A stretch of 63,044 nucleotides of DNA, filler included, from Hyphochytrium catenoides (GCA_900088475.1; 10 parts of 10 records of this genome joined end to end with filler, not necessarily neighbours in it), one strand, 5' to 3'. Counted from the first letter of the whole stretch, positions 1 through 11,925 are shown. Numbers and translations: made by a program. Notes: generated by a model from the letters alone, not told the origin.

Positions 1-291
1 CGCTCTCTCTCTCTCTCTCACTTCCTGTCTCTGTCTTTCTCTTCCAGTGGTCTTTGTTCCAAACATACAGCGATATACACATCCATTTTGCTTTTTTCTT
101 TCTCTCTCTCTCTTTCTTTAGTTTCCTCTCTCTTTCTTCCTCTTTCTTTCCGAGTTTCATGTTGTGCCTCCCTCCTTCTCCTCTATACATGGGCCAAGCT
201 AATATTTCGGCAGTCATTTGACCAGACCTTCCGTCTCTCTCTCTCTCTCTTTCTTTCTCTCTCTTTCTCTCCCTTTCTCTTCTCTCTATAG

Positions 292-813
292 GAAACAGAG
301 ACAGCTCCCTCTCCTGCTGGGGGAGAAACGCCCAACGGTCTCTCTCTGCTGAAGGAATTGGTCGACAGGAACGGGCTCCTGGGTGTCCAGCAGGTTGGGA
401 GCTTCTGGAAACTCATCCGCAGGGCGAGCAAGGTAAGAGAGAGAGAGAGAGAGAGAGAGAGAAAATGGGGAGAGAAAGAAAGACAGAGAGAGAGAGAGAG
501 GTCTGTTGCTATGGAAAAAGCAGGGAGGGAAGAGAGGAAGAAGAGAGAAGACTCTGTTGCTATTCATCCTCGGGGTCTATATTTCCTCTGTCTCTCTCCC
601 CATCTCTCTGTGTCTCTCTCTTTCTCTCTTCTTTTCTAATCTTTAGCGCTCTCATCGGTTGAAAGTGCCTTTCCTTTCATTCCTTAAGATGGAAATGTGC
701 ATTCGACTAAATATTCTTCCCTCCTTTTCTCTCTCTCTTCTGTCTCTCTTCTTCCTTAATTTTCTCCCGCCATTGAGCAAAAAGATACTTTCTGAGACTG
801 ACTACTAAACACA

Positions 814-856
<43 letters not shown>

Positions 857-893
857 CTGTCTCTCTCCCTCTCTCTCTCTCTCTCTCCCTCTC

Positions 894-929
<36 letters not shown>

Positions 930-1280
930 CTAGCCTCAGCACCGCGCTCTCTTCCTCATCATCCTCGAGCGTTCCGCCGCCCGTCCCGCGGTTCTTTCTC
1001 AGTTTCTCTCTCTTGGCGGTCTCTCTCTCCTTCGTTCCTGGTTGAGAGAAGCTGCGGGAGAGGGAGAGGAAGAACTCATAGAGTTAGTGCTGGACATTCT
1101 TAAGATGTTTCCTGTCACCATCGAGACAGTGCGCGCCGCGGACATAGTAAAACCCTTAAAAAAGTTGAAAAAGAGTCAGCATGGAAAGCTGTCTCTCCTT
1201 GCCGGACAGGTGCTAAGTGCCTGGCAGAAGAGCTTGGAAGCGAAAGAGAAAGAGGAGACAGCCGGTGGAGGAGAGAAAGA

Positions 1281-1312
<32 letters not shown>

Positions 1313-1839
1313 AGCAGCAACCAGGGTCGTCTCTCTCTTCTTCTTCTTCTTCCTCGTTAGGAGGACAAGGAAAGGGAGAAGGAAAAGGTCTGAAGAGAGG
1401 AGCAGAAGAGGTGAAGACATCTGAGGGAGCCGCACCAGCAGAGGCAAAGAGAAAGAAAGTCTCTCCCCCGTCTGCTCTCTCTCTTTCCTCCGAAGGCGTC
1501 TCTCCTGCTCCTTCCTCTTCTTCCGCAGCCTCTCTCGCCAAGGCTGCGGCGTCTCTCTCTCCTTCTTCTCTCTCTTCGGGCACGGGCACGGACGTCCTGA
1601 GTGCGATTCTTGGGACAAAGGAAGGGCCAGCAGCCAAGCGAAAGGCCGTCGTTATACCTGCTGATGAGAGTACGAAGCCTGTTCTTTCTCTCTCTCACTC
1701 TCCCTCTCTCTCGCTTCCTTCCTTCCTTACATTTTCTGGCGCTGCCCTAGAGCTCTCTTTCGGACTCTTTCTCTCTCTGCTTTGTGAAAATCTCATTCCA
1801 CGCCACAATGGAATTCGATTATCTCTCTCTCCCTTCTTT

Positions 1840-1882
<43 letters not shown>

Positions 1883-2062
1883 CTCTCTCTGGCTCTCTCT
1901 CTGGCTCTCTCAGTAAACTTCTCTCTATATCATCACTCTCTTTCTCCCGCTTTTCCCTTTCGCTTACTCATTAACTCTCTCTTCTTTTTATTTCAACCTC
2001 TCTACCCTTTTCTCTCTCTCTCTCTCACTTTCTCCCCCTCTCTCTCTCTCTCTCACTTTCTT

Positions 2063-2105
<43 letters not shown>

Positions 2106-2364
2106 GCTCCAGCGCCTGAGCTGCCAAAGATAGAAAGCTTCGATTCAGAGAAAGAGAAAGTGATTGACTCTTCTTCCTCTTCCTCTCGCCGTCTCCGGTG
2201 GGCGGACCATGAAGGCAAGCCTCTGACTCACATCAAACTCTTCAAGACAGAGAAGGAAGAGGGAGGAGGAGGAGAGAGAGGAGGACAGCCCGCCAGGAGC
2301 TTTAAAGATGCGCAGAAGAGTGAGCATCTGATAGAGAGAGAGAGCATGCAAAAGGTAAGACAGG

Positions 2365-2409
<45 letters not shown>

Positions 2410-3788
2410 CGGAATGTCCCCCAACGTCTCTCTTTACTTTGTGTCTCTCTTCTTCTTCTTCTTCTGGGACAGGGTTCATGCTCTTTTATATGAGTTGTCT
2501 TACCTCTTTTGTCTCTCTCTCTCTCTCCCCCTTGTACTTTCTCTTCTCTCTTTCTCTGTATCTTTCTCCCTGCTTAGCGGCCCGTGTACTCCATCCCACG
2601 CACTCACTCAATCTCTTTCTCTCTCTCTCTCTCACCTCTCTCTCTCTCACCTCTCTCTCTCGACTCTCTCCGTTGTCGACCCGCATTCTTCTCCACCGCT
2701 CTTCTCTCTGTCCCCCCTTTTCACAATAATCCGACCTCTCTCTGTGTCTCTCTCTCCCTCTCTCATTCTGTCTCTCTCTCCCTGTCTTTCTTTCTTTCTT
2801 TTGCTCTATCTCTCTTTCCTTTCTCTTTTTCTCTCTCTCTGTATCTATCTATCNNNNNNNNNNNNNNNNNNNNNNAACGCCGGAGACAGAGGCGCAAGAA
2901 GGAAGAACGAGACGACTTATGCAAGCCATTTATTATAGGAGAGAGGACATTCCTCTCTCTCCTCAAGACATCTCTCTCTCTCTCTCCCCCTCCACCGCCT
3001 CCTACAGCTCAACGCCTATCATTATACCTCTGGCACACAGCCAACCTCCAGCAACCACCTCTTCTTCCTCCTCTTCTTTCTCTCTCTCTCCTTCTCTCTC
3101 TTCCGAAACATCTTCTTCTCTCTCTCTCTCTCCCTCTCCCGCCGCGGCTCATACATTAACTATGGACAACCTCCCCGAGGCGATAAAGAAACTCAGCCCT
3201 GAACTCTTAGAAGTTCTCCTAAGAAACGAAGAGTTAGCGGTGGAAGTTTTAGAAAACGCGGCGAGAGGTCTTCCCCTGGATATGCAGAAATTGTATGGGG
3301 AAGCAGAGAGACAGGGGATTAGGATAGAGAGAGAGACATCTTCTCTCTCTCTCTCTTCTTCTCCTGCTTCGCATATGTCTCTCCCTCCTGCTCCTCCTTC
3401 TTCTTCAGGAGGACCCGGAAGGCAACAGAGAGGAGAGAGTTGGGCTGCGCCACCGTATCGCCATCCTGCTCCCTCTTCTTCTTCGGTCTCTCTCTCTCAG
3501 CATCACTTCTCTTCTTCTCTCCCTCCCCATCCTGGAAGACATCCTCCTCCTCCTCGGTACGCTCCTCCTCCTCCCCATTTTTCAGAAGGAGAGAGAGAGA
3601 GGGGAGGAAACTATCCGAGAGAGAGAGAAAGAGAGAGAGGAAGACTTCCTCCTCCTTGTCGTCATTTCTCTCGCGGATTGTGCCGCCTGGGGAAGGATTG
3701 CAAGTTCTATCATGATCCTAATTATGCTGATCTACAGAGAGGAGGAGGAGGAGGGAAGCCGCCGCCCAACTTTAACCCTCGCCGTTGA
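292..3788 (+). CDS. PPP1R10: PP1 nuclear targeting subunit (PNUTS/PPP1R10)-like protein; 5' end not seen; exons 292-432, 934-1669, 2107-2354, ~2876-3788 (acceptor lost in N gap)
   Basis: GT-AG introns keep the reading phase. Translation gives a TFIIS-N-like domain (FLSLGGLSLLRSWLREA...LKMFPVTIETVRAADIVKPLKKLKK...VLSAWQK), an RVxF-type motif (RRLRWADHEGKPLTHIKLF), MQAIYYRREDIPLSPQD, and a C-terminal CCCH finger (CRHFSRGLCRLGKDCKFYH), the PNUTS domain order. Confidence 0.85.
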
Positions 3789-4728
3789 GAAGAGAGAGAG
3801 AAAAAGAGAGAGAGAGAGAGAGAGAGAGAATATGTGCGTGAGGGGGAGAGAGAGATATTGTTCTCAGTGTTTCACTGTATGAGGAGAGGAAGGGGAGGCA
3901 AGCCGCCCCCAACTTTAACTCTCGCCGTTGAGAAGAGAGAGAGAGAAAGAGAGAGAGAGAGATCGTTGTCAGTTTTTTTCAAGTGTGTTGTTAAGTCCTA
4001 TCTTCCTTAAGATTGAACAAGATGGTGGTCTTAGGCCCTTGCGTCTTTCTCTTCCCTTACAAATTTGAATCGTCTCTCTCTCTCTCTCTCTCTCTCTCTA
4101 GACGGCCGGGGAGAAAAGGGGAGACAGGAGAGCAAACCTTCTGGGGCCCAGGCAGAGGGAAGTCACAGAGAGAGAGAATGGGAGAGAGACAAGGAGAGAG
4201 ACAGACCAAAAAGAGGGAGAGATAGAAAGCAAAGAAGAGAACTTTTAGAGAGAGAGAGTGATTGGGAAGACTTACTGAAAAAAAAAAAGGATTTAGGGAG
4301 TAAGAGAGAAAGAGTGCGAGGGGTAGAGAGATAGAGAAAAAGAGAGAGAAGAGAGAAACAGAAAATAGGGGCTAGTTGGTTTCTGATTGGGCTAACCTCT
4401 CTCCACCCCCAAGGGAGGAGAGAGAAATAATCATTAGCACTTTTATAAATAACGGAGAGAGAGAGAGAGACAAGGAAGAAGAGAAATCATTGGAACCGAA
4501 ACGAAGAGGGTGGGAGGCAACAGAGAAAGAGAGAGGAGGGAGAGAGCAAAGAGAAGAAGGGCACTTAAAACAGGATCTAGAAAGAGTGTGAGAAAGAAAG
4601 AAAGAGAGGAGTGGCGCGAAAAGAGAGATAATAGACAGTAAGAGAGAGAGAGAGAGAGAGAGAGAAAAGCGGAGAAGAGAGAGAGAGAGAGAGATGCCAA
4701 CGCTACAAACAAAAAACACGTAAGATTT

Positions 4729-5099
4729 CTAGCGCCAAAGAGGGCGACCTTGCTCTTTCTCTCTCTCTTTCGTGTTTGCTTTCTTTAGAGAGGAGCGCAG
4801 CGAAGAGCTCTCATTGCTTTCAGAAGAGAGAGGAGCCGGCACTCGACTGCTTCCTCTCTTTTCCAGGGTAGGACGAGAGAGAGAGAGAGAACGGCCCGCG
4901 CTGCGGAGAGAGCCAGGTGCTTGGAGTCTAGAGACAAAGCGTGAAGAAGAGAGAGAAGAAGAGACACTTGTCTCGGAAAGTGCATTTCCTTGCTCTGTTT
5001 TCTCTCCTGTCGTTGTTCGGGGAGAAAGGGGTCTCGTTCCATCTTTCCCGTTACTGGTAGGCAATAAAGAGAGAGAGACACCACAGAGAGAGAGAGAGT

Positions 5100-5154
<55 letters not shown>

Positions 5155-6001
5155 AGAGAGTTACCGGTGGAGACCACGAGCCGGAGGAGAGTGAGCAGAC
5201 AAAGACCAAAAAGCGAGACAGAGAGAAGGAGAACGATAAGGTTACCAAAAGGGAGAGACATTATGAGAGAGAGAGAGAGAGAGACAGAGACCAAATAGCG
5301 AGCCAAAACTCTAGAAGAGAGAGAGAAAAAGAGAGCGGTAGAAGAGAAAGACGAGAAAAACTTCTATCAAAAGAGTTCAATAAAGGGGAAGGAAGACAAA
5401 GATAGACCGAGCGAGCGAGAGATATAGAGAGAGAAGTATAGAGAGAATTATGGAGAGAGAAAGAGACACTTGTAAGAAAATCTCCCTCTTTCTCTCATCG
5501 AATTCGGAGTTGTCTCTTCTCTTTTCTCACTCTCACCTTGTTTCTTCCCCTCCTGCGACCAGCGGAAGAGAGAGATCATCTAGTTCTCTCTCTCCTAGGG
5601 AAGAGAGTTCGCCTCTTGTGCTCTGAGAGCTTGATTGCGTGGCTGTCTCTGTCTTTGATCTCGCACTTCCTGGCCTGCCTTGGGAAGAAGAAGAGGAAGA
5701 GAGAGACATCCTCTTTCTCTTCTCTTGCGCTNNNNNNNNNNNNNNNNNNNNNNNNNNNNNNNNNNNNNNNNNNNNNNNNNNNNNNNNNNNNNNNNNNNNN
5801 NNNNNNNNNNNNNNNNNNNNNNNNNNNNNNNNNNNNNNNNNNNNNNNNNNNNNNNNNNNNNNNNNNNNGAGAGGATGGGGAGAACAAAGACACAGACGGA
5901 AGAATCAATGAGAGAGTAAAGGAGAAAGACACAAAGGACGCAATGTAACGAGAAGAGACATGAAAGTGAGAATGGGGGAGAAAGAAAGAAAGAGATGGAA
6001 A

Positions 6002-6039
<38 letters not shown>

Positions 6040-7243
6040 AACCAAGGAGAGTGCGCAAGATTAAACAGAAGCGTTTCTCTCTTTTTTTGCTGCGTTTACC
6101 TCCATCTTCATCTTCCTCAGCTGTCTCTCTTTGGCTTCTCTCTCTTCATTGTCTCTCTGTCTCTGCTCTTGTTCCTCTTTCAGCCGCACCAATAGCTCCC
6201 CATTTGTCCTCTTAAGAGCCTCATTTTGTGCGGAAAGATTGCGCTTTAACTCGTCTAAGGATTTCGTGCGCACATCAAGGACGGTCGACATCTTTGCAAT
6301 CCCACGCGTTTGCTCTTGTTTCTGCAAAACAGAGAGAGAGACATCGTGGGAGAGAGAGAAAGTGAGAAAGAGAGAGAGAGAGGAGAGTGAGCAGCAGGAG
6401 AGACACATTGTATTACCAAGAGCAAGAGGGCAAAGCGAGAGTCTTATGTTCGGGATGAAAGAGAGAACGAAAGAATAGCCGAAGAAGGGTCAGTGGAGAG
6501 AGAAAGAGCGAGAGAAAGATAACTCTATCACACTAAAATGGTAGTAAAAAGATTGGATAGTCAACAGCCCTGTGTCTCTCTTTACTTTCTCTCTTTCTCT
6601 CCCCTACCTGCTGACTGAGAGCCTCCTCAAGCTTGTTTTTCTTGGCGTTAAGAGTCTGAAGCTCAGCCTTTAGCTGCTGGTTCTCTCCCTCCAATTTTTT
6701 CAGGTCAATCCTAGGCGTTCGTTGGGCAGCAGAGAGAGAGACACGGCGAACTCTTGAAGCGAACTGGAGAGAGAAGAGAGTTTCATCTCCTCCTCTCTGC
6801 GTGGGGCAGACCGTAAGGATCATTAAAGTCTTCGAAGGACCGCCTAACGCATCCTGTGTGCGAGAGACAAAAAAAGAGAGAGGGAGAGAGAGACAGGGAG
6901 AGAAAGAGAAGAGAGAACAGAAGGTAGAAAGACGAGAGAGAAAAGGATGAGTGGCTCGCTGGGATGTAGGAAAAACATGCAGTTGCTGTGCGATGCCTTC
7001 CTTGCATTCCGCATGATTCTCTGCTTCTCTTCCTCTATCTCATCTCTTTACCTGACAGTTTCTCACACTCTCTCGCTTATCCTTCCTTTCTCTCCCGAGT
7101 TTTCTTTCTTTCTCTCCTCCCTCCAGCCATCTCCCTTTTATCGCCCTTTCCTTCTTGCCTGTCTCCCACGAGTCCCTTTATCACCTTTCTTCTGTGCTCC
7201 CCCCGTTCTCTCTCTCCTTCGACCAGAGTCTCTCCCTCTCTCT

Positions 7244-7289
<46 letters not shown>

Positions 7290-10200
7290 TTCTCTCTCTC
7301 TCTCTCTCTTCGTTCTCTCTCTCTTTCTCTCTCTTCTCTTACCTTGAGGAGGTAGGTCAGCTTTGAATTTCTATAAGGAACATGCGTTCTCTTTTTATCA
7401 AGCGCCTCAATCACATCTCCTAGGGCAGCTAGAGACTTGTTGATGAACTGCGCCTCTTTCAACTGTTCCCCACTGACGCCACTCTTTCCTACTCTCTCGC
7501 TTCCTGCCAGATCCACGAGAAAGAGTCTCCCCTGGGTGGGGAGAGCCTCTCCCCCTGGGTCTGTCCCCTGGACTTCTACAATGAGAACAGAGTGAGAGCG
7601 AGAAGAGTGCTCGTGGATGTTGGTGGCGGCGACGCTTCTGTTTTTCATTCCTCTCTCGAAGAGAGAGAGAAGACTCTCGGAAGAAGAGACTCTCTCTTTC
7701 GTGAGGTCAGGGATATAGACAGAGTCAGCAGAAGACGGATCTTGCCTTACTTCTAGCTTGGGCTGTTGCTCTCCTTTGAAAGAGAGAAGGTCACGAATCT
7801 CTTCATTGTAGATCTCAAAGAGAGAGATAGAGATAGAAAACTCGAGGGGCACTTCTCCTTCAAAGACACGAGAGGATGAAGAAGAAGAGAGAGCGCGCTT
7901 CTCTCTCCCCTCTGCAGAAGAGGGTCTCTCTCCCTCCAAACCGCTCTTTCCTCTTTCTCCATTTTCTTGTCTTCTCTCTGTCCCATCAAGGAGAGAAACA
8001 TCACCACCATTTACAGGAGAAGAGGAAGAAGAGGAGAGAGAAGAGAGAATGGTCCCTCTTGCTGCTGCTAACTCGAAGATTCTCTCAATCAAGAGAGAGT
8101 TTAACCCTGGATTCTCTCTCGGTCCCTGCATGGTGTATGTCTTTCCTGAGCCGGTCTGTCCATAGGCCAACACACAGGCATTAAACCCTCTCACGACAGA
8201 GACAGCGAGAGGTTCCACCTGGTGAAAGACATCCACTTGCGAGTCAGAAGGAGAGAAAACATGGTCAAAGGGGAAAGAGCGCCATCCTCTTCCTCTTCTG
8301 TCATAAAAGCCCAACTCTAAGTCTCCCAGCACTTGGACGACTGTCTCTTCTTCTGTCTCTTCCGGTCGGCGCGGCCGCACTCTGCACATGACCTGGATTG
8401 TCCCTTTTAGCTCTTGAAGACGAGAGAGAAGCTCCGCGTTTCTCTTTCTCTGTTCTTTCAGTAGCTTTGTGACAGTCTCCAAGTGGGGTTGTTGTTCCTT
8501 GTTTTCTTTCTCTCTCTCTCTCTCTCTTTCTCCCGCTCCTCCTCCTCCTCCTCCTCCGCTCCCACCTTCTGACAGTGCAGAAGAGAGAGAGAGAGACGAG
8601 CCAGAGCGCATCACATCGGGTCCAATAGTGCCATTTCCCATAGCCGGTAACGGCTTCACCGGCATCCGCATCTGGGCTTTTAAGGCTCGGACTTCAGCCT
8701 CCAGCTTCTGATTTGCCGTTTGCAGCTCTTCAAGGTCGTCCCGGAAGAGGGAAGAGGAGGCGGACGGTCTCTCTCCATTTTCTCCCTGTCCTCTCTCTCT
8801 CTCTTCGTCTTCTCCATCTTGTTGAAGGTCGTCACGGGCTTCGTCTCTCTCTCTTCTCTCTCTTTCTCTTTCGCGCAGGGCCGTAAGTTCTCCTTCCATC
8901 TTCTGCAAGCTCTGCCTGAGATGGTGCAGCTCTTGACTCTTTCCTGTCACCTCGGCCCGCAGGACGGCCAATTCTTCTTCTCTCTCGTTCAGTTCTTCCT
9001 GCTTTGCCCCTAGAAGTGTCTGCCACTCTTCTCTCTGCAAAAACGCACTCTCTTCCATCTGAGAGATTCTCTCTTCTAACTGAGAGAGCATCTTTCGTTG
9101 CTCTTCAAGAGAGAGAGAAAGATGCGCATTCTCTTCTTCGTGTTCTCTCACCTGCTGTTCAAACTGCTCTCTCTCTGTCTTTTCTAGGGCGCGGGAAGAG
9201 AGAGAGGGCGTGGGAGAGCCGGGAGGAACAGGACGGGACATGAGCTCATCGGTAAGCTCTAACATTTCTTGAGAGAGTTGGTCGTTCTTTTCTTGCTCTT
9301 CCTTTAGCTTTTCGGTCAATGTCTCCATCTCTTCCTCTAACTCTTGAATGTAAGCTTCCATCTCTGCTTTCTCTTCCTCATGTTCTCTCTCTCTCTCTTC
9401 CGATGAAGAAGCAGCAGCGGCCCTCTCGGACCGTACAGAGGCTTCAACACTGAAGCTGTTTCTACGGATATCTAGAGAAGAGAGAGAGAGAGACGGAAAA
9501 GAGAGAGAGAGTGAGAAATAGGAAAGAGAAGAGAGAGATAGAGAGTAGCAATAGAAGGAAGAGAATAAGGGAAAGCAGGAAGTCACCAATTTAAGATTTT
9601 AGGTCAGGACTCTTGGACATCGACGGAGGTCAGCAACGGGAACAGAATTCTTCAAAAAACCCAAAGAGAGAGAAGAGACACACGGAGGGAGAGCGAGACG
9701 AGAGAGAGAACGAGAGAGAGAGAGAGAAAGAGACAGAGAGAGAAAGAAAGAGACAGAGAGAGAGAGAGAGAGAGAAAGGGAGAGAGAGAGAGGGGCAAGA
9801 CCTCGAGAAGGAGAGAAACGGAGGAATTGCTAGGAAAGAGGAAAATGTGCCAGGAAAGAGTTCAAAGAGGTGTGGAAAAATGGGCTAGCGACGTATCACG
9901 GACAGAAAGAGAGAAAAAAGAGCGAAAATAGAGAGACCGAGAGGGAGAGAGAGAGAAGAGAGAGAAAGAGAACAGAGGCCTCTAACCATGAGAACTTTTC
10001 TTCAGAACTTGGATCTCAGACGCCAGCTCTTGGATCTCTGCTCTGCTTCTCTCTGAGGCGATCTGATGCTCTTCCCTAAGTTCCTCATACTCTTGCTGCA
10101 AGAACACTTTCTCTTCCGTTATTTTCTCCAGTCGATACCGCAGGTCATCCGCACTAGCCTAGAAGGGAGAGGAAGGGAATAGAAGAGGGTCAGAAAGAGA

Positions 10201-10334
10201 GAGGAGAGAAGGAAGAAAGAGAGAGGATGAAAATGAGCGCTTTAGAGAGAGAGAGAGAGAGAAAGGGAAGGAGAGAGGGAAACAAAACAGAAATAGACGG
10301 GACCAAAGACAGGACAGGGGAAAAGAGACGGACG

Positions 10335-10426
<92 letters not shown>

Positions 10427-10939
10427 AGTAGGCACGAAGATTGCTATAGAAAAGGACCAAGCGAAGAGGGAGAGAGAGAGGGAGAGTGTACACCCTCTCC
10501 CCAAATAGCAATACTACAAGCACAACTTCCTTCTCTCGTTACCATACAGCCCCTCTTTATGTTCTATTCTGTCTCGCAACGTTACCTTTGTGATCCTCTC
10601 CTGGCTTTGCAGCTCATCATTTTCCTGCTCGAGAACTCTTTTCTCTTCTTCCAAACGCGCCTTTGTCTCTCTCAGCCCTTGTATCTCTCCCTGCAGTCCT
10701 ACCAGCTCTCGCCCTATTAAGCCCGCTCTTTCTCGCGCTTCCTCTAACTCGAACTGCAGCTGCAGTTTCTCTCTTTGAAGCTCAGAAATCTTTCCTTCCG
10801 CCCTTCCAAGCTCTTCCTCCAGCTCCTCCTCCAGCTCGCGGGAGGAAGAAGTATAGTCATCAAAGTTTGATTGTAAGAGAGAGAGTTCTTGTTGGCGTCT
10901 CTCCGCGAGAGCTTTATAGTGGCTGAGGAAGGGAAGAGA

Positions 10940-10994
<55 letters not shown>

Positions 10995-11117
10995 TGAGGG
11001 TTAGGAGAAGAAGAGAGTGAAAAGAGACGAAAAAGCAGGAAGGAGAGAGAGCGATGGACGTTTATTGGACGGCGGAGGATATAGAGATGGTGTATAAAGG
11101 GAGGGAGAGAGACAGAC

Positions 11118-11153
<36 letters not shown>

Positions 11154-11382
11154 GGAGAGAAAAAAAGAAAGAGAGAGAAAAAGAAGAACGAGAGCGAGGA
11201 GCGGTAGAGCACCGAGACTAAGTAAAGACGGCGAGAAGACAGGGTCATGGCGATGAGGGCCGAATCAAAGGAGAGAAAGAAGCAGGAGAGAGAAGAACTA
11301 CTATGACAACTAAGCATTGAACCTACCTGAGTTCCTTCTCTATAGAGTCAAACTGCCGCTGCTGCTCATCTAAGCTGCCCAT
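4729..11382 (-). CDS. Kinesin-14 (KIFC3-like) motor with N-terminal NudE/NDEL1-like coiled coil; exons 11382-11327, 10922-10586, 10158-9987, 9471-7343, 6853-6608, 6321-6100, then uncertain 3' exons (~5731-5537 and ~5060-4729)
   Basis: Kinesin-14 neck LQELKGTIQVMCRVRP, P-loop AYGQTGSGKTYTM, switch I SSRSH, switch II LVDLAGSER, HVPYRNSKLTYLLKDALGG and ETLFSLQFASRV. The first six exons join in phase across GT-AG introns. The 3' exons are tentative because of an N gap. Confidence 0.88.
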
Positions 11383-11925
11383 CTTTCCTTCTGTGCTCTC
11401 TTTCTCTCTCTAGAAGACAGAGCGAGAGAGAGAGAGAGAGAGAGAAAGAGAGCGAGAGCGAGAGGGAGAGAGACTTTTGCAGACTGACGCTTATGGCGCT
11501 CGTCCAGGCTGAGAAATTAACATATTTATCGGCCGTCCGTCGTCATCTGTTCACTCTGCAAGCACGGGATGTCAGGTTCTCTTCTGCACCTTTGAGACGT
11601 CAAGGAGTATGACCGGCAGGAGGCGTATATTCTGGCCATGAAAGGTTTAGTTAGCCTTTCTCGGGCATCATTGCCGCGGTAGACGGCTTTCGAGAGCGCT
11701 CCGTTGGTGCCCAAGTGTACAGGGTCACTCGTCCTTATATAATTCCAGAGATCCTCTTCTCTTCTTCAGCTCCTTCACTTATAGTGCAGCCTGCGAGCAG
11801 GGCAGAAGTTTGCGCGTCTGCAGATTGATGAGTCTCCAGTCTCAAGAAAAGCTCAAATTTTATTGGCCTTTTTGCCCAATTTCTCAGTCTCATTTTCCAT
11901 CATCACTCGGCGCCAATCTCAAGGG

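Follow-up and report, generated by a model that had tools for sequence, protein, structure and literature searches.

A stretch of 63,044 nucleotides from Hyphochytrium catenoides (GCA_900088475.1; ten parts of ten records of this genome joined end to end with filler, hereafter the window) carries on its minus strand what is almost certainly one genuine gene for a kinesin-14 of about 1066 residues headed by a coiled coil of the NudE/NDEL1 type, and the same near-certainty applies to the fusion as such and to the head being a homologue of NudE. NudE and LIS1 are core regulators of cytoplasmic dynein, and kinesin-14 is the other minus-end-directed motor, which takes over dynein roles where dynein is absent. 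Proteins of the same architecture are already in databases under motor names, and the window gene is a further member of a conserved, apparently undescribed kinesin-14 clade; we found no description of a NudE-kinesin fusion in full-text searches of the literature or in one kinesin survey. We consider it somewhat more likely than not that this conserved NudE-headed kinesin-14 links LIS1-dynein to a kinesin, a coupling suggested by the contact residues that the head retains.

Gene model and homology of the head

The gene has six exons between 11382 and 6061 (Table 1), read from the sequence and then checked for their coordinates by script, which add up to 3201 nt, that is, 1066 codons and a stop. 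All five introns are of the GT...AG type, with the donors GTAGGT, GTAACG, GTTAGA, GTAAGA and GTAGGG in that order and, at each acceptor, a pyrimidine tract ending in AG; the reading frame is entered across them in phases 2, 0, 1, 0 and 0, and none of the six exons contains an internal stop. Runs of N occur only at 2854-2875 and 5732-5868, both outside the kinesin gene. The peptide that an earlier note on this DNA had quoted for exons 1 to 3 is the exact translation of those exons, and its claim that they splice in phase (2, 0, 1) into the kinesin exon with no stop and no contig join was found to be correct. The exon 1 peptide opens with MGSL[D/E]EQ, comparable to the MGSLEEQ of a relative (P0001), and carries an F-x-S-I-E-x-E-L motif N-terminal to the NudE-like coiled coil. 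When relatives were searched against the window with tblastn, exon 5 was aligned by four of them (P0001, P0002, P0127 and P0131); exon 6, which has the acceptor TTTTGCAG in phase 0, was aligned by no homologue in the same search and is the weakest exon of the model.

In tblastn alignments, exons 2 to 5 are colinear with proteins of Plasmopara halstedii (P0040), Pythium oligandrum (P0132), Aphanomyces invadans (P0007) and Chrysoparadoxa australica (P0131) and with the JGI entries P0001 and P0127. A Tribonema minus protein (P0134) covers the head and the start of the motor, and two brown-alga fragments (P0123 and P0143) the head alone; Chrysoparadoxa, Tribonema and Hapterophycus belong to the Ochrophyta according to a taxonomy look-up. 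The intron positions can be compared with those of a closer relative, represented by a genomic contig of 1639 nt (L003) that is 66%, 54%, and 54% identical to exon 2, exon 3, and the start of exon 4, respectively. This contig shares the donor and acceptor positions and the phases of introns 1-3, with CTCAG/GT as its exon 1 donor, and its introns measure ~65-100 nt as against 404-515 nt here, which makes it the best available support for the junction between 9987 and 9471. Because the exons are colinear with full-length homologues and L003 keeps three intron positions and phases, the gene model stands far beyond chance.

These relatives also bear on the possibility that the model has joined two genes lying head to tail, a small NudE-like gene made of exons 1-3 and a separate kinesin-14 gene from exon 4 on. 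Such an artefact would fit with the lack of RNA support at the locus, with intron 3 being the longest (515 nt), and with the split or truncated state of some public models of relatives (P0124, P0136 and P0168). However, full-length relatives are colinear across the junction, and two further sequences, L001 (3809 nt, open reading frame (ORF) 124-3651) and L002 (4161 nt, ORF 106-4059), which look like transcripts, each have a single ORF, unbroken and flanked by short ends, that encodes both head and motor. Moreover, the phase-1 intron of L003 lies at the same codon and leaves the exon 3 and exon 4 homologues only ~65-100 nt apart, no stop intervenes, and exon 4 needs no start context. The same holds on a wider scale in oomycetes, where 35 proteins of 655-2086 aa from Phytophthora, Peronospora, Hyaloperonospora, Peronosclerospora, Plasmopara and Pythium match residues 1-190 of P0040, and 33 of these long proteins with a NudE head carry both the Kinesin and the Microtub_bd domain. 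Among the exceptions, a Phytophthora ramorum protein (P0168, XP_067743833.1, 'Nuclear distribution protein nudE-like protein 1') shares 75% identity with P0040 but skips residues 616-934 of the latter, the whole motor, whereas another P. ramorum model of 1169 aa has the motor; P0168 represents an artefact of annotation or else an isoform that lacks the motor. We therefore regard a spurious joining of two genes as very improbable. That head and motor belong to one polypeptide, as the earlier note had proposed, is borne out by the colinear relatives, by the single ORFs of L001 and L002 and by conservation in many stramenopile genomes; the architecture is not unique to this window and is found in both oomycetes and ochrophytes. 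In the 5' flank of the P0001 contig (L001 1-123, GC content 66.5%), TTAGGG-like repeats (GGTTAGGGTTAGCGTTAGC) are present just before the start codon.

The relationship of the head to NudE emerges from searches that were run exon by exon (exon 4 in two pieces, 8051-9469 and 7343-8014). Among 177,635 PDB sequences, the 112 residues of exon 2 rank the NDEL1 coiled coil (2V71) first, with E 1.1e-3 against 0.056 for the runner-up, and residues 2-111 align in register with residues 15-128 of the 2V71 chain. Against 1.84 billion cluster representatives, exon 2 retrieves 54 proteins at E <= 1e-3, nearly all matched at their residues ~5-125; a Pfam scan of 28 of these 54 placed NUDE_C directly downstream in 11, which marks these as true NudE and includes dictyostelid proteins named "Lis-interacting protein" and an insect "nudE-like 1-B", and a kinesin motor in four. 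Profiles give a much sharper signal. An alignment of exon 2 with ten related N-termini (A1) matches 2V71 at E 5.6e-19, followed by two NDEL1/NDE1 fragments and, as the best unrelated chain, one at E 3.3e-5. Compared by hhalign with an alignment of 12 canonical NudE N-termini (A2; 11 with a Pfam match to NUDE_C, plus Cavenderia P0129), A1 reaches a probability of 99.86% and E 3.8e-31 in a match of 172 columns interrupted by one indel. Residues 1-200 of the Plasmopara relative match 2V71 at E 7.8e-10 over residues 13-181. Exon 3 extends the similarity, since it is 45-49% identical in tblastn to P0040 125-178, P0007 119-171 and P0132 123-182 (E down to 4e-10), and the equivalent region of the relatives aligns with 2V71 up to residue ~184.

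Could this resemblance be a chance likeness among coiled coils rich in Glu and Leu? Exon 2 does draw weak sub-cut-off Pfam matches to many coiled-coil families, and exon 3 alone has no specific match in the PDB; nor do residues 1-200 of P0001 alone match NudE there, though P0001 matches both exon 2 and the A1 profile. Pfam returns only generic coiled-coil families for exons 2 and 3, all under cut-off (E 1e-4 to 1 for exon 2), because it has no model for the NudE N-terminus. By contrast, the profile search separates NDEL1 from the best unrelated coiled coil by many orders of magnitude, the hhalign match runs across 172 columns with one indel, and the proteins matched by exon 2 are matched at their N-termini, many with NUDE_C immediately downstream. 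The profile and hhalign results refute chance likeness, to which we give practically no weight. Scored against NudE and against generic coiled coils, the N-terminus thus specifically favours NudE, and the head is, on the strength of these sequence comparisons, homologous to NudE beyond mere coiled-coil likeness. It shares ~175 homologous coiled-coil residues with NDEL1, NDE1 and fungal NudE, but it runs straight into a kinesin stalk and motor where NudE ends in a disordered regulatory tail, and the protein has 1066 residues compared with ~250-370 in the canonical NudE examined. The earlier note held that the NudE of animals and fungi lacks a motor domain, which agrees with the sequences that we have seen.

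The motor and its clade

No Pfam domain was detected in the stalk, before residue 340 of exon 4. The motor that follows displays the P-loop GQTGSGKT, switch I SSRSH and switch II DLAGSE in its translation, and the final 28 positions of the Kinesin profile (300-327) correspond to exon 5 residues 1-28; to judge from its sequence, the motor is catalytically intact. All 120 motor homologues listed carry PF00225 and PF16796, and those with a name are KIFC1/2/3, KIN-14 or Kar3/KlpA. In a careful IQ-TREE analysis of 42 motors, which has no non-kinesin-14 outgroup and leaves the subfamily rank unsettled, the window sequence, six fused kinesins and P0002 form a clade of eight (support 100/99) that stands apart from KIFC2/3, from KIFC1/Kar3 and from the KIN-14 of plants, and within it the window sequence has P0001 as its sister (96/91). 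The same clade is recovered, with a support of 97, in a quick tree of 122 motors; in these local trees, 12 codons at 8015-8050 were entered as X. Neck family, best matches and tree agree in assigning the motor to kinesin-14, the class named in the earlier note.

The protein resembles KIFC2/KIFC3 and plant KIN-14 in its combination of Kinesin and Microtub_bd neck, its stalk N-terminal to the motor and its intact P-loop, switch I and switch II, and KIFC3 and KIN-14 are its best named motor matches (33-50% identity). It departs from them in having a NudE module as its tail instead of a microtubule-, actin- (CH) or cargo-binding one, a coiled-coil extension of ~140 residues after the motor, a motor insert of ~66 residues and GT in the neck. 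The insert, rich in Ser, Gly and Glu (~66 codons, ~8054-7856 on the minus strand), lies within the motor after the region following the P-loop and is left unaligned by P0002 and P0131. A hidden intron was considered at this place and rejected: we read the insert as a loop insertion because the only candidate, the sole GT...AG pair at 8014-7912, is 103 nt long and would break the frame.

The stramenopile proteins annotated as 'kinesin-like protein KIFC3-like' are the family of the window gene. These proteins, for example those of Plasmopara halstedii (P0040), Pythium oligandrum (TMW56683.1) and Chrysoparadoxa australica (CAM9662521.1), have the same order of head, stalk, neck, motor and tail, fall in the same motor clade and share the invariant head residues, with 39-45% identity to the window gene in the motor and 31-44% in the head. 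Closest to it are P0001, which is its sister by the motor tree, and the fragment L003/P0121, which is 66% identical in exon 2. Public records name the fusions by their motor alone and, in one mis-modelled case, the P. ramorum XP_067743833.1 called 'nudE-like protein 1', by the head alone. A tree of the 172 head columns places the window sequence and P0121 in the poorly resolved half that holds canonical NudE and sets most fusions apart from the NUDE_C proteins, but this split has only 86 in the Shimodaira-Hasegawa-like approximate likelihood ratio test (SH-aLRT), and the tree is too poorly resolved to distinguish single from multiple fusion events.

Contact residues and the proposed coupling to LIS1-dynein

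Kinesin-14s form parallel dimers in which an N-terminal tail is followed by a stalk and, on the C-terminal side, by the motor, and both NudE-LIS1-dynein and kinesin-14 focus microtubules at minus ends and spindle poles. The N-terminal coiled coil of NudE is likewise a parallel dimer, which scaffolds LIS1 onto dynein via the intermediate chain (PMC3101096, PMC3013018). In NDEL1 8-192, the E48A/E52A substitutions abolish dynein binding (Zylkiewicz et al. 2011, PMC3101096), whereas E119A/R130A abolish LIS1 binding, with no LIS1 pull-down, as well as aster focusing, and the organisation of spindle poles requires both sites (PMC3101096); the roles of these residues are documented in PMC3101096 and PMC3013018. 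In our alignment, the dynein-binding E48 and E52 correspond to exon 2 E31 and E35, and the LIS1-binding E119 and R130 to exon 2 E98 and R109. The invariant columns of A1 are S27, E31, E33, L34, L38, E98 and R109. In the 38 kinesin fusions compared, the equivalents of E48, E119 and R130 are invariant (38/38), as are those of the Ser and of E50 in the acidic motif, and that of E52 is Glu in 37 and Asp in one; the four binding positions are also invariant in 13 of 13 canonical NudE. The fusion thereby keeps both the S-x-E-L-E-x-E-L-E dynein motif and the L-E-Q-x-N-D-x-L...R LIS1 motif of NDEL1, NDE1 and fungal NudE. The deep split between oomycetes, ochrophytes and the window sequence provides independent support for the retention of these residues.

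From these elements a dimeric kinesin-14 can be proposed in which the NudE/NDEL1 coiled coil would act as the N-terminal 'tail', followed by a stalk of ~340 residues, the neck, the motor and a short C-terminal coiled coil. The parallel NudE dimer may at the same time hold the kinesin dimer together at its distal end. Placed at the tip of the stalk, the head would recruit LIS1 and/or dynein and so tether LIS1-dynein to the microtubule-bound kinesin-14, most likely at spindle poles or other minus-end structures; these sites are favoured because NudE-LIS1-dynein and kinesin-14 both act there. A dynein partner is probably available, since cytoplasmic dynein 1 is retained in stramenopiles: it has been lost only in Archaeplastida and Entamoeba, and DYNC1H1 is present in the diatom Thalassiosira pseudonana (PMC2239267).

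Couplings between kinesins and the NudE/LIS1-dynein module do exist in animals and fungi. Dynein is carried by kinesin-1 together with NDEL1 and LIS1, and in yeast the Kip2-Bik1-Pac1 pathway operates. The protein described here resembles these systems in that a kinesin is physically linked to a LIS1/NudE/dynein module; there, however, a plus-end-directed kinesin is joined to the module non-covalently and dynein is delivered to plus ends, whereas here the link is covalent and the motor belongs to a minus-end-directed class.

Several observations weigh against a coupling to LIS1-dynein. The search of sequencing runs gave only runs with 5-6% of the sampled words, leaving the locus without transcript support. 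The C-terminal half of NudE appears to be missing: neither exon 3 nor exon 4 has a NUDE_C (PF04880) match at E up to 1, and with a limit of 1e-3 none is seen in P0127, P0131 and P0132, which are fused relatives. It is in the NUDE_C region that NudE has its second dynein-binding site and its regulatory phosphosites. Every fused head is, in addition, short of four residues relative to canonical NudE, at a single place between the dynein and the LIS1 sites, a difference that could change the relative geometry of the two; it would shift the coiled-coil register and orient the sites differently. The 38 fused sequences come mostly from closely related oomycetes, and 38/38 accordingly overstates the number of independent observations. 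The headless member of the motor clade, P0002 (P0184; JGI, 1227 aa), has no recognisable NudE head (hhalign probability 28%) and retains only a faint LEQ-x-N-x-x-LE-like trace at residues 8-70, so that at least one lineage can do without the head; this may reflect secondary loss or a truncated model. The neck 'GN' pair (~8410-8370, minus strand) is GT here, with Asn replaced by Thr, and GG in the sister sequence P0001, whereas GN is kept in the other clade members in which the motif was found and in KIFC1, KIFC3, Kar3 and KIN-14. This Asn matters for directionality in Drosophila Ncd. Its replacement makes the direction of this motor uncertain, and minus-end movement is assumed from the class. 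Finally, we infer binding for the family as a whole from the residues that it keeps.

Part of this evidence speaks for a different function, in which the NudE-derived head has been repurposed, either for dimerisation and stalk formation only or for another partner (a cargo adaptor, axonemal dynein or microtubules), and the kinesin works independently of LIS1 and cytoplasmic dynein. The loss of NUDE_C, the 4-residue indel relative to canonical NudE and the existence of P0002 in the same motor clade all point that way, as do the replacement of N122, invariant in canonical NudE, by Gln in most oomycete fusions and the separation of most fusions from NUDE_C proteins in the head tree, albeit with 86% SH-aLRT only. 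Nevertheless, the positions that are invariant in the family are surface residues that mutagenesis ties to dynein (E48/E52) and to LIS1 (E119/R130), not merely those of the heptad core, and the contact residues are kept across the oomycete/ochrophyte split. We consequently hold a repurposed head to be possible but the less probable explanation, and think that the head still binds LIS1 and/or dynein with a likelihood somewhat above even.

Gene features, surroundings and significance

Table 1. Coordinates of the exons and of the main protein features of the kinesin gene, counted from the first letter of the window
Feature	Position	Strand	Description
Exon 1	11382-11327	-	56 nt; ATG at 11382; 18 codons and 2 nt; donor GTAGGT
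Exon 2	10922-10586	-	337 nt; 112 in-frame codons; core of the NudE-type coiled coil, corresponding to about NDEL1 residues 19-132
Exon 3	10158-9987	-	172 nt; distal NudE-type coiled coil, corresponding to about NDEL1 133-188; end phase 1
Exon 4	9471-7343	-	2129 nt; stalk, kinesin-14 neck and most of the motor
Exon 5	6853-6608	-	246 nt; end of the motor (DALGGPSKTLMI...), then coiled coil
Exon 6	6321-6061	-	261 nt; C-terminal coiled-coil tail, 86 codons and TAA at 6063-6061
Acidic motif S-R-E-L-E-E-E-L-E-E-E-L	10843-10808	-	equivalent to NDEL1 S44-L55; spans the E48 and E52 equivalents
L-E-Q-E-N-D-E-L...E-R segment	10630-10595	-	equivalent to NDEL1 E119-R130, with the LIS1-binding residues
Stalk, first part of exon 4	9471-8453	-	~340 codons; low-complexity coiled coil between NudE head and neck
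Kinesin-14 neck and motor start (ELKGTIQVMCRVRP)	8452-8060	-	Pfam Microtub_bd PF16796, E 3.1e-27, exon 4 residues 340-470
Kinesin motor domain	8383-7343	-	PF00225, E 9.3e-84, profile positions 1-289 of 327

Upstream in the window, on the other strand, a neighbouring region at 1042-3788 contains a TFIIS N-terminal domain (Med26, PF08711, E 5.5e-5) in ORF 1042-1974 and a CCCH zinc finger (PF00642, E 1.6e-5) in ORF 2919-3788. The two ORFs, between which the N run at 2854-2875 is located, are probably exons of one gene, and their combination of Med26 and CCCH domains resembles a PNUTS/PPP1R10-like architecture. Microsatellites of the (TC)n/(GA)n type occur in every intron and intergenic stretch of 1-11925 (29 Tandem Repeats Finder rows; for example 817-929, 1822-2102, 7229-7339, 9665-9792 and 10336-10426), and in the introns of the kinesin gene the pyrimidine-rich strand is the coding strand. 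These (TC)n repeats are probably the reason why ~5% of the sampled words matched sequencing runs of unrelated origin.

Tentatively, the NudE-headed kinesin-14 could be the main or only NudE homologue in stramenopiles and in this organism, an idea for which we see less than an even chance. All the named stramenopile matches to the head are fusions or fragments of fusions, and P0136, the one oomycete protein that is a candidate for a stand-alone NudE, gave no stand-alone orthologues, in a word-based search that is a weak test of absence. If it were so, LIS1-dynein regulation would be hard-wired to a kinesin, and kinesin-14 would recruit, position or restrain cytoplasmic dynein at microtubule minus ends as part of a hybrid machine.

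The annotation as "KIFC3-like" conceals a domain that Pfam does not model. The fusions constitute a natural experiment on the NudE coiled coil without its C-terminal half. Because the family occurs both in oomycetes (Phytophthora, Pythium and the downy mildews) and in algae of the brown, yellow-green and related groups, its function can be tested in tractable organisms. The relation between dynein and kinesin-14 is normally studied only as a balance of forces; with a LIS1/dynein scaffold covalently joined to a kinesin-14, the two minus-end motor systems would be expected to act on each other directly, through mechanics or through regulation.

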